64,000 nucleotides of DNA from Amoeboaphelidium protococcarum X5 (lineage: Eukaryota > Fungi > Aphelidiomycota). Each line of letters opens with the position of its first letter. The stretch's first letter is position 1. The position numbers and the translations under genes are program-made. The notes beneath the pieces are model-generated. The model made no database searches, had not been told where the DNA came from, and saw nothing but the letters and a program-made list of their open reading frames with translations. Shown here piece by piece: positions 8,294 through 15,420 of this stretch. The stretch is from contig JALDTO010000206.1 in assembly GCA_023515725.1 (NCBI GenBank), forward strand, positions 392,189 to 456,188. Reading direction: 5' to 3'.

Positions 8294-8420
8294 AATTATT
8301 GTTGTTCTTGGTATGTTAATTGCTTGATTAAGTATTGTTCTGGAGCAAAATAGAAAAACTGCTAATCACCGTGGGAAATTTATCGATATTGATGCCCCTC
8401 CCCCTGTTCACGGAGTATTA

Positions 8421-8433
8421 ATGTATTTTTCAC
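8421..8433 (+). repeat. Left terminal inverted repeat
   Basis: ATGTATTTTTCAC preceded by TA; reverse complement of 11751-11763 apart from the terminal base. Confidence 0.7.
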
Positions 8434-8472
8434 ATTTTAAGCGAATCACAACAAAGTAGGTCAAGCGTAGTG

Positions 8473-9060
8473 TCAAACGCGACGATTTCAATCAGGGCGT
8501 CCTCTACTCTCCGCAAAATATACTGCCATCAGTAGCATGCTTTAAGTTGCGTTGACATCCCGATATACAAATAAGGTAGGCCTTAGACTTAGCAATTTGG
8601 GCAAAAGCTAAGCTTGACTCCACCTACTTCTGTTGACGGTCAGGACAGCTGGACGATACATGCAGAAAGGAGCTAGAAGCATCAAAGCAACAGAGCACAG
8701 GGTGGGACTACTTGGGGACGCGCCTTCTACCCTTCTTAACGCGACGGTAGAGAAACCAACCTTTTCCAATTTTACACCCATGGCGGCAACATGAGCAGAG
8801 CTTTGTACTGTGGTATCTGGGGACGGAGACGACCAATCCACGACGACTGAGGCGACGCGTTAAATCTACAACGGGCACTGGTGGATTTTTATTGACATGC
8901 ATCATGCCAGCATTGATCACCAAAAACATATCCCTTAAGCCTGTTCAGCCTTTGAATATATATTGTCGATTGAACGCTCGTTGGATTCGATTCTCATCTT
9001 ACTATGATTGTAGGTAAACGAGGCGATTGAAGCATCTGTTGCAAGCGTCAGCAACCTAAG
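8473..9060 (-). pseudogene. Degenerate Fanzor/TnpB C-terminal fragment (RuvC-II, zinc finger, RuvC-III)
   Basis: PPVPVVDLTRRLSRRGLVVSVPRYHSTKLCSCC, then FCPNC and YRDVNATQSMLLM..RGRPD in shifted frames; parallels PATP..RVRLVPEYRTSQRCSNC..HCP..WHRDVNAARNI of the intact copy. Confidence 0.75.
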
Positions 9061-9518
9061 AGTAGAGGCTGTTAAGAGGAACCAAAAGGGGGAAAAATAT
9101 ACTGTAGCCGTTCAGTATATACTGCAGCTGTCCGCCGATTATTCAAAGTCATAATCAGAAGACTCTTTTACTATGACAAATGTCTACATTAAGCCTTGAT
9201 GTGTACCAATATAATTGCGCACGAACAAAACTACCATGTAAGCGTAAATCGAAGTACAATAATGCGTAATATAAATTTAACAAAATGTATAGCGCTTAAT
9301 CAATATATATATCGTTCATTGATCAACCGATGATTAACTTCATTAGATGTTCCATAGACGCATTGGTCACTTCTCAATTTAGCGGCTGTCTATATCTTGT
9401 GTCAAGATCTTAACGTTGATCTGCTTCCTCCTATTTATAGCAACTACTTGACTTAGCGGTTAAAATTAGATTTGGCAAAGCGGGACTCCATTTTGAGATT
9501 CGTCCGAGCCATTTTCAG

Positions 9519-9550
9519 CCAATCATAAAGTTGGTTTTTTGGGTATAAAA
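9519..9550 (+). promoter_or_regulatory. Putative CCAAT and TATA boxes of the Fanzor gene
   Basis: CCAAT at 9519-9523 and TATAAAA at 9544-9550, about 50-75 bp upstream of ATG 9596. Confidence 0.45.
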
Positions 9551-9595
9551 GCGTAATCGGACTGGTTTCAACTCTTTTCTTCAATAAAATCAGAA

Positions 9596-11686
9596 ATGGC
9601 AGATCCCCCTATAGAGGTAGCTGATATCGGTGGTGCCTTACCGCCGCGTAAACGTCAACGAGAAGTAAATTGTAAAGCATGTGGTCGCGACGATTACAAG
9701 CGCTCATCCAGTAAACTGTGTCCCAATTATGTCCCTCGTGCAAAAAATGCTGCCAAACCACAAGACAATATGGGAATACCTGTGGCTGAAGCCTACGTAG
9801 CTGTACCTATTGGTTTAAATGTATTTTGCAAAATCGACGCGGTGAAGCATGAGATAAGTGATTTGGTTTCGCGTTGTACTGATCTCAAAGTAGAGGCTTG
9901 CAGACTTCTCCTGTCCTTCGTGCTTAATCATTTGGTATACAATCCTGACACTCCAATGCCAGACATCCGCTTTGGCGCAAATGGGTAGATGCGTAACTTC
10001 TTCAGCTCTTTGATTGCTAATCCTAGGCGGCGTGATCTGCTTAATCGTAATACCTGCAACTGGGCGGCTTTAAACGAGTTTATTGAAGCACACTATGTAC
10101 CTCGTCGTCCTGCTGACTTGTTTTGGTGTGACATGCGAGGCTACTCAAACATGGTTACTGCCTTGGCTTCAGCTCACAATGACGATTGCGCTAGACATAT
10201 AAGCACAAACTTGCCATCAAGGCTGAAACAATGGCTGCGCCACAAGTTTCGAAAACATCTCGGCTTCTGTTTGGAGGAGGATGATGTTTGCACCCTTGCT
10301 GTTTATGTCTTGGCGTTGATAAACCCACCTGAAGATATTGAAGAAATGCCTCCTTATCCTGCAGAAATTATCGACAATTGTGGTAACGGAGAATTGGTGG
10401 TGTATTACATGGACTACTACGAGACGCGTGCACGTCAATACATCCTTTGCAATCTCCCAATGGATAAGGCTAGTCTTCAGAACAACTGGCATCTGTATCT
10501 GAAATCCATGTGGCGTATCCTTCGTACATTTGAAAGTAATCATCAAATGTATGAGGAGGAGTATCTGCTAAACAATGAAGGTCCTCTACTAAACGTTTAC
10601 GCGTTGCTGCCTCTAAATGGATTTACGCAGAAACACATCCTGATCACGTCCAATGTGCTGAAGGAGATATGTGTTGCTGCTAATCTGCCAGATGTCCGTC
10701 AGATGGATGTTCACGCTTTGTGGTCACAATGTTTCAAGTTGAACAAGGTCTCCACTACTGGCAATCAGAGAAGACGTTTTGGCTACTCCATAACATCCGA
10801 TGGTGTTGGCTGTTCTGCTTCCGTTTTACGTCCTGCCTATCCTGCCCCTCCTGCTAGCCGCTACGGGTTCGCTTTCGATGGTACCGGATATTAACCGCTG
10901 GATGTAAACAATGAGACCCGCGTTATCGGGATTGACGTCAATCGTGGCGTGCTTTTGGCTGCTTCTTGTGGTCCTGATGACCGGATTGCAGATGTTCCAA
11001 CCGATCAGACGCCGTTTGCTGATGGAACGCATGAGCTGGTGTACACGACTGCTAGATGGCGTGAAGAGAACGGAGAAAAGTTTGGTGAAAAGAAGAAGGC
11101 TGCATGGAATGAAATAGCTCCAGAGGTCGTTAATGCCATGGCCCAGATTCCTTCCGCCAAATCAACTTCGTTTCTGGGGATCATCTAACATTTGCAGTAC
11201 GTACTGCAACATAGAGATGCATTCACTGGCTTCTACCGTCCTGAGATGTGGCGAAAGCTGAGGAGAAAGCTATTCTCCAAGCGCCAAAGGGCCTATGACA
11301 ATTTGGCGCGTATGCTGACTCTCCGCCAAGATGGTTAGTTTGACCATAACACCATCATTGCATACGGCGCTGGCAACTTTGACACTGCGTCTCCTGGATA
11401 TCCTGCGACTCCAAATAAGCGGCTGTTTTATGAGCTGAAGAAACGCTGCAGAGTCCGCTTGGTCCCTGAGTATCGAACCAGTCAAAGATGTAGTAATTGC
11501 GAGAGTGAGCTTGGTCAATCACGAGTATGGAGAATTAAGCATTGTCCAAATAACAATTGCTTAGCTATCTGGCACCGTGATGTGAATGCGGCACGTAACA
11601 TTCGCTACATCTTTCTGGCAAGAAATCGTGACGGTGGTGAAAGGCCGGTTCCATTTCGATACGATCCTCCTCGTCCTCAATAATGA
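9596..11686 (+). CDS. Fanzor1 (eukaryotic TnpB-family RNA-guided endonuclease), 696 aa, apparently intact
   Basis: Four in-frame ORF pieces join under TAR=Gln. WED-like LLP..SITSDGVGCS; RuvC-I VIGID (D447); IIAYGAG; RuvC-II VPEYRTS (E625); CSNC..CPNNNC zinc finger; RuvC-III WHRDVNAARNI (D662). Confidence 0.92.
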
Positions 11687-11783
11687 TCAGTCCAGGCTCC
11701 GCGCGCAACAGTCTGATCGGCGGTGCAAATCCGTTGCTGTCCCTAGTTCGGTGAAAAATACAGTAACACGCGAATATCGAGAT
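11687..11783 (+). ncRNA. Candidate Fanzor omegaRNA (77-nt scaffold up to the TIR end plus flank-derived guide)
   Basis: GC-rich segment between the stop codon and the element end; hairpin CGGCGG-TGCAAAT-CCGTTG; GATCAG/CTGATC and ACAG/CTGT complementarities; expected position for Fanzor/TnpB guide RNAs. Confidence 0.55.
11751..11763 (-). repeat. Right terminal inverted repeat
   Basis: GTGAAAAATACAG followed by TA; reads TA-CTGTATTTTTC on the minus strand, resembling Tc2/pogo-type ends. Confidence 0.75.
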
Positions 11784-12841
11784 TACGCGCTATCTGGTCG
11801 TCGAGTTCCGAAACAGTTGATGAAGAAGCAAGTTAATAATAAAACTAAGTTACTACTAAAGTTACTTTTGTATATACAACGACTAATCTCATTCACCCAT
11901 GATCATTATAGCAGACTCAACTGCTTTTCAATCAACAGCTTTCCCCAAATAGAAAAAGCGCTATTCACAGTTCCACAGAAGAACATCACATCACCTACAA
12001 GATCACAGTCAGAAAGATTCATTAGAATTCAATACGAGCGCGTCTAAAGTAAAACTTACTTGGATTGTCAGACCAGCCGTGAGCAGAAATATTCATCTCA
12101 GATTCTTAAACGTTAAGCCAAGATCCACCATCGTCCGAGAATAAGAATAAATTTTGGAAGTAACGCTCAGCCTCAGCCTAGTTGTTTGAATACACAACAA
12201 CGGTGAGAGAGTCCAGCAACTGAACCGTGATACAAAAATTCTTCAGCGGCTCAAATTTCCTAATAAACAATTATTCGCTCTACACTGAATATAGGGATTA
12301 TACCAGTTAACACCTAAATCAAATCTTACTGAATAGCGCATTCTGTCTAGCTTGTGGTCCCAGCCTTGTTCCATCAGCCATTTCATGTTAATGTCAATAG
12401 GGACAACACTTGGTTGACATTTGATGACAAAAACTTGGTTCGCCATAGTACTCTCCTGGCTCATTGAATCATTTGACAATCGATAATCCTTAAGTGGTAA
12501 GGAGGATATTGGGGTATTCTGCACAGTCATTTCTTTCTTGACAACTTTTATACTAAATTATAAGTAAATTTTGTAACGGTTTAATGGTATATTGCACGTA
12601 TGAAAGCGAGGCTATTGAAGAATGCGTCCACGAGAAAAGCAGAAACGCGAAACGCGAAGACGCTTAGAGCACAGCTGACGCTTATGATAGTTCTCGCAGT
12701 CAAAGAGAGAGAGAGAGAGAGAGTTTGAAGCGAAAATAAGGGACAAGGTAACATTAACAATGTTGTAACGATAGAATTCTCATCAGTCTCATCTCCAACA
12801 AGGTATGCCAACATGACGATCAGTATAACAGAGGAGGAGTT

Positions 12842-15420
<2,579 letters not shown>

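Follow-up and report, generated by a model that had tools for sequence, protein, structure and literature searches.

A chimeric, non-autonomous Fanzor1 transposon of an aphelid with a left end derived from a second Fanzor element

The window analyzed here, a 64,000-nt stretch of the genome of Amoeboaphelidium protococcarum, an aphelid that parasitizes algae, holds a mobile element (hereafter the A element) that raises the question of whether a single transposon can carry two nucleases and aim their guides at both sides of one insertion site. A first-pass annotation had read the element in this way, with two divergent Fanzor genes that each point at a terminal inverted repeat (TIR) and an insertion in a palindromic TTAA. 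We found instead a chimeric, non-autonomous element that encodes a single nuclease (FzA), because the piece of the second Fanzor (FzB) is broken and the left end is the right end of an FzB element. The features of the locus are listed in Table 1.

Table 1. Features of the A element (8419-11765) and its immediate flanks, in window coordinates
Feature	Position	Strand	Remarks
Flanking AT followed by left TA target-site duplication (FzA TAM predicted as 5'-ATTA)	8417..8420	+	AT before TA in 10/12 copies
Decayed copy of putative FzB omegaRNA scaffold, possible ghost guide	8419..8515	-	Stems weakened
Imperfect left TIR of ~26 bp, corresponding to the inverted guide-side (right) TIR of the FzB element	8421..8446	+	
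Pseudogene fragment, FzB codons ~609-759 of 759	8461..8915	-	81% nt identity; weak PF07282 match
Segment holding the partial TIR-like motif 9090-9106	8916..9150	.	Long copies only (n=4)
FzA 5' non-coding region	9150..9595	+	Common to long and short copies
FzA, intact 696-aa Fanzor1 (TAA/TAG=Gln)	9596..11686	+	RuvC D447 (D-V-N), E625, C4 zinc finger, D662
Putative FzA omegaRNA scaffold through right TIR and TA	11684..11765	+	7 nt of terminal hairpin/TIR missing; by analogy (PMC10432273, PMC10711439)
Right TIR (13 bp remaining) and right TA duplication	11751..11765	+	
Flanking DNA from which FzA would take its guide	11766..11780	+	By analogy (PMC10432273, PMC10711439)

Boundaries, copies and insertion sites

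In the window sequence, positions 8415-8433 and 11751-11769 form an inverted repeat. The assembly (23.6 Mb) contains a second copy of the DNA that flanks the element, at ~88% identity, and four full-length copies of the element itself (97-99% identical), including that of the window. Eight shorter two-ended copies (91-92% identity) present the same TA-flanked ends, and all of them lack element positions ~168-731 (window ~8586-9149), with position ~167 fused directly to 9150. The genome also contains a single fragment of the left end, as well as older relics of the right end. The limits of the element were set by the three other full-length copies and by an element-free site in the sister subgenome, whose breakpoints match 8418 and 11759-11765, and the boundaries first proposed are thus confirmed. 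The inverted repeat described earlier is real, but the TIR of the family is imperfect and ~26 bp long, and it seems to measure 13 bp in the window because 7 nt are missing from the right TIR of this copy, which leaves 13 bp to pair. No copy of FzA with its own left end at 9060-9590 was found in the genome, in agreement with the proposal of one mobile unit, and the same ends recur in 11 further copies, none of which encodes a second Fanzor.

Several copies show unusual structures. The tip of the left TIR of L004 (L004:1480-1510) is swapped for a 9-bp copy of the right flank and the left junction of L006 (L006:1325-1352) is a short palindrome, both of which resemble aberrant repair at the left end. 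Copy L011 carries two different inserted repeats of ~170 bp (C98:635572-635745 and 637665-637835), each of which recurs in the genome as several near-identical copies.

Only TA is duplicated at insertion, and this duplication together with the TIRs places the element in the Tc1/mariner group. The other copies are not inserted in TTAA, so the palindromic target was not borne out, and the 12 flank pairs likewise led us to reject a piggyBac-type element. On the left side, AT precedes the TA in 10 of the 12 copies, relative to a background of 10.7% (P about 10−8). The right flanks of the same 12 pairs show no consensus: a single one starts with AT and six have A as their first base. This one-sided bias predicts, by analogy with known Fanzor systems, a single TAM for FzA, 5'-ATTA, rather than a guide and a TAM on each side as had been proposed. 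Were a second system functional, constraint would be expected on the right flank as well, unless its TAM is little more than TA.

The first-pass annotation had expected the empty site to be the simple junction GGAGTAT-TA-ACACG. The element-free homeologous site instead reads GGAGTAT-TACAGTA-ACACG, both in the assembly and in a contig from run X4. The additional bases (TA-CAG-TA) look like an excision footprint and fall within the span of 0-4 bp reported for a pogo element (PMC9976928). Finding such a footprint in the sister subgenome is difficult to reconcile with a recent insertion, unless the element was copied between subgenomes or homogenized. At other loci, two paralogues of the L003 site are element-free with single-TA spacing and the homeologue of L007 differs by one base (+1). 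The element-free site of L002 has ambiguous coordinates and a pattern search for it found nothing, and the homeologues of L008 and L011 contain gaps at the junction. The right end was found joined to the same flank in two unrelated metagenomes (X2 and X9), and the X9 copy carries the 7-nt TIR deletion specific to the window. Beyond 53 bp, the X9 flank is nearer to the homeologue than to the window, a comparison of 30 letters (window 11819-11850) that gives a weak hint of copying between haplotypes.

An intact Fanzor1 and the remnant of another

Only when TAA and TAG are read as glutamine do host genes (e.g., an MCM helicase) and the Fanzor have open frames. As a control for the genetic code, the MCM3-like helicase gene at 12842-15268 (minus strand) presents nine in-frame TAA/TAG codons at glutamine positions. 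The same reassignment (UAR=Gln) has been reported for A. protococcarum (PMC11687900).

Under this code the intact Fanzor that had been described on the plus strand is indeed open from 9596 to 11686, and 77 nt separate the end of its frame from the right end of the element. FzA matches PF07282 (5e-12) and possesses the RuvC triad with the glutamate in the alternative position, six residues upstream of the C4 zinc finger (E625-x6-C632), followed by R661-D662; together with the TIRs and the TA duplication, this bears out its earlier assignment to the TA-TIR Fanzor1 elements. The DPG motif at RuvC-I is described as 'near exclusive' in Fanzor1 (PMC10711439) and is absent from FzA, which has D-V-N in all four long copies. 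Relatives of FzA present DPG or DPN, and we counted D-V-N, in which the catalytic aspartate is kept, as a variant because SpuFz1, an accepted member with DPN, also departs from DPG. A full-length FzA frame was found in five copies with pairwise dN/dS of 0.08-0.22, which indicates that FzA is under purifying selection.

FzA scored 574 bits on a profile of 38 relatives, and the best PDB matches of this family profile were SpuFz1 (1e-42), then GtFz1 and PpFz1. The fold was assessed by proxy on P0001, a relative 41% identical to FzA, whose structure model aligns to SpuFz1 with a TM of 0.63-0.65; FzA and FzB were otherwise searched as pieces. The sequence of P0001 alone gave no match against the PDB, whereas the family profile did. 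FzA has the size of a Fanzor1 (600-800 aa) and, as modeled through this proxy, probably its REC/RuvC fold. A pogo-type transposase adjoins the relatives of FzA in four of six unrelated contigs, three of them in tandem, which suggests that the ancestral layout included a transposase. One relative lies among primase-helicase (D5/AEP) genes in a 95-kb ENA contig (L056); these surroundings are viral or plasmid-like, and no pogo transposase is present.

The minus-strand Fanzor of the first-pass annotation is Fanzor-derived and points at the left TIR as claimed, but it is a 455-nt 3' fragment rather than a gene, and it stops ~40 nt from the left end instead of ~50-70 nt. The N-terminal 80% of the protein is missing, and with it the first catalytic aspartate of RuvC. 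The fragment contains four single-base indels (frameshifts) and an in-frame TGA, and its catalytic glutamate is replaced by arginine in all four long copies, such that there is neither a full-length frame nor a set of three catalytic residues. Upstream of the fragment, we found no Fanzor homology in any frame of 8916-9595, and a third Fanzor helix suggested by eye in 8916-9150 did not score when compared with the profile or with ~150 homologues. No copy of the element can encode a second nuclease. The ratio pN/pS of ~0.55 between the remnant and FzB is as expected for a sister lineage that later decayed. We rejected the idea of a nuclease-dead protein maintained by selection because the frame varies among copies and is absent from the short ones. 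The model of two functional nucleases with their own guides at a palindromic TTAA site would account for the divergent layout and the shared TIR, but most of its second protein is missing or mutated, its gene is nearly absent in 8 of the 12 copies and the insertion sites are not TTAA, so that we consider it refuted in this genome.

The left arm has a clear source. Over element positions 1-497 it shares 81% identity with the 3' end of an FzB element, and the left end matches the right end of that element, as anticipated by the proposal that a second Fanzor has its guide-side end here. Intact FzB genes are found at C249 and C207 and encode a 759-aa Fanzor1 with DPG, E and RD, which shares 24% identity with FzA over 198 aa and ends ~37 nt from the same TIR as the left end of the A element. 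Upstream of FzB lies a DDE_1 (pogo-type, PF03184) transposase, with a full-length pogo-like frame interrupted only by TAA/TAG at C207:301882-303015. The first-pass annotation had called for a DDE transposase family with the same TIR, and this gene provides a candidate, the TIR match to the transposase-bearing element having been made at its right end only. The two loci where a pogo transposase precedes an intact FzB (C207:293363-303600 and C249:1-2334) are candidates for the autonomous element; the C207 region looks partly duplicated or triplicated around an assembly gap. A scan of metagenomes for relatives of FzB returned one distant match, probably a giant-virus Fanzor. At L009:4254-5411 (C211:212700-213860), 130 bp separate a short A copy from an FzB gene that is decayed and internally deleted, beyond which lie remains of pogo.

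All A copies whose left end could be read have preserved 167 nt or more of the FzB end, and the short copies, which retain 167 nt, carry their own set of differences from FzB. In the left arm of L003 (alignment columns ~330-408), a tract of ~80 nt shows 3 differences from FzB, compared with 24-25 in the other copies; two of the frameshifts are absent from L003, although the gene is still 5'-truncated. A weaker FzB-like tract was detected in L004 (columns ~150-260). The simplest reading of these patterns is gene conversion from FzB, and all of the tracts lie outside the last 100 nt of the element end.

Mobility, guide RNAs and competing explanations

We consider it likely that the A element is a cut-and-paste element of the pogo branch of Tc1/mariner, non-autonomous, with one working Fanzor1 and a borrowed left end. 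Its ancestor would have had the order TIR, pogo transposase, FzA, omegaRNA, TIR. The transposase and the native left end would then have been lost and the inverted last ~500 bp of a co-resident element with a pogo transposase and FzB gained, and this piece, which bears the same TIR, supplies the left TIR. The transposase of the FzB element may mobilize the A element in trans into TA sites. As in SpuFz1 and TnpB, FzA would load an RNA made through the right end, with its guide from the right flank, and would cut element-free alleles beside the 5'-ATTA TAM; repair from the occupied allele would therefore preserve or copy the element. The FzB piece would be a decaying passenger, at times patched by conversion.

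In Fanzor1 the TIR and the target-site duplication belong to the RNA scaffold (PMC10711439). At the right end of the A element, the same stems were predicted across 15 copies with few breaks and one-sided changes only. Support for a guide RNA at this end is modest because no covariation was found across these copies and predicted folding was not above that of shuffled sequences. The last 90 nt of FzB fold with z=-3.7 into three stems, one of 7 bp closed by the TIR and TA. The corresponding 90 nt of the borrowed end give z=-0.8 in the window and from 0 to -1.4 across the left ends of A copies.

These values bear on the possibility that the borrowed end still makes a ghost omegaRNA that loads FzB produced elsewhere, with FzA served in cis and FzB in trans and the empty site cut on both sides. 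The end retains more of FzB than a TIR needs, its arms are refreshed from FzB, intact FzB genes are present in the genome and ghost omegaRNAs work with SpuFz1 (PMC10432273). The terminal hairpin is also invariant and some stems partly survive in the long copies. However, this hairpin is the TIR itself, the other stems are broken and no compensatory changes or covariation were found at the left ends of A copies, the conversion tracts miss the terminal 100 nt, the promoter and 5' part of FzB are gone, and no consensus exists in the right flank where an FzB TAM would lie. We therefore regard this second guide as unlikely, if the best placed of the alternatives. If it were real, one transposon would feed guides to two Fanzor families.

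Another account derives the left part from an internally deleted FzB element (8419-9106) that sat upstream of FzA, with the outer ends now moving together; Fanzor would play no role in site choice and the AT/TA bias would come from an asymmetric transposase complex. The TIR-like motif noticed earlier at 9090-9102 does exist (9090-9106), ends in TA and faces the left TIR, and the two ends of the element differ in their first three bases. However, the motif is only partial, has no subterminal box and is confined in this genome to the interior of the four full-length copies. An independent mini-element was ruled out by the lack of a free copy of 8419-9106 in the genome, where 8916-9150 has no match elsewhere either. 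Against an asymmetric complex as the source of the bias, the target consensus of the pogo element Passer is palindromic (PMC9976928). A nested origin as such could be accommodated in the borrowed-end explanation that we favor. What competes with that explanation is the attribution of the bias to the transposase alone, which appears improbable, more so than the second guide.

Comparison with known Fanzor elements

TA-flanked Fanzor1 elements with TIRs, their link to mariner, chimeras and ghost RNAs are already known (PMC3627910, PMC10432273, PMC10530073). The closest counterpart of the A element is Spu-1 of Spizellomyces punctatus (PMC10432273, PMC3627910), which also lacks a transposase, has ~30-bp TIRs with a TA duplication and carries one Fanzor1 that ends ~75-80 nt before the right end. 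SpuFz1 shares D-x-N at RuvC-I with FzA and is the best PDB match of the FzA family by profile and fold. Both elements conserve two flanking bases before the left TA, AT in the A element and CA in Spu-1, where CA matches the CATA TAM (PMC10432273). The A element differs in its predicted ATTA TAM, its genes written in the TAA/TAG=Gln code, a left end taken from a second, distant Fanzor family, and the presence of a candidate transposase in its genome, none having been found for Spu-1.

The mariner-type elements PGv-1, PUl-1 and PUl-4 (PMC3627910) combine a Tc1/mariner transposase with Fanzor1 in autonomous members, and Fanzor-only members share their TIRs; like the A element they show a TA duplication, but the transposase related to the A element is of the pogo type (DDE_1, PF03184). 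Chimeric Fanzor elements were reported as common (PMC3627910). In the literature that we covered, which is incomplete, we found no report of a Fanzor element that uses the guide-side end of another Fanzor element as its left end. Ghost Spu-1 loci (PMC10432273) resemble the borrowed end in having a Fanzor right end without an intact protein gene in cis, but they are conserved and expressed, whereas the borrowed end has diverged and points away from the cargo gene.

The A element thus points to a route by which a Fanzor element without its own left end can stay mobile, the inverted right end of another serving instead. The family constitutes a natural test bed for the role of Fanzor in eukaryotes, with a candidate transposase, two intact Fanzor1, a predicted ATTA TAM, and occupied and element-free alleles in two subgenomes, where the likely excision footprint would come between the TAM and the guide target. 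Elsewhere in the genome, two pairs of facing TIR-like motifs, 660 bp apart at C205:742106-742765 and 2.8 kb apart at C146:814390-817230, show no match to the A element and possibly represent a MITE and a third cargo family.
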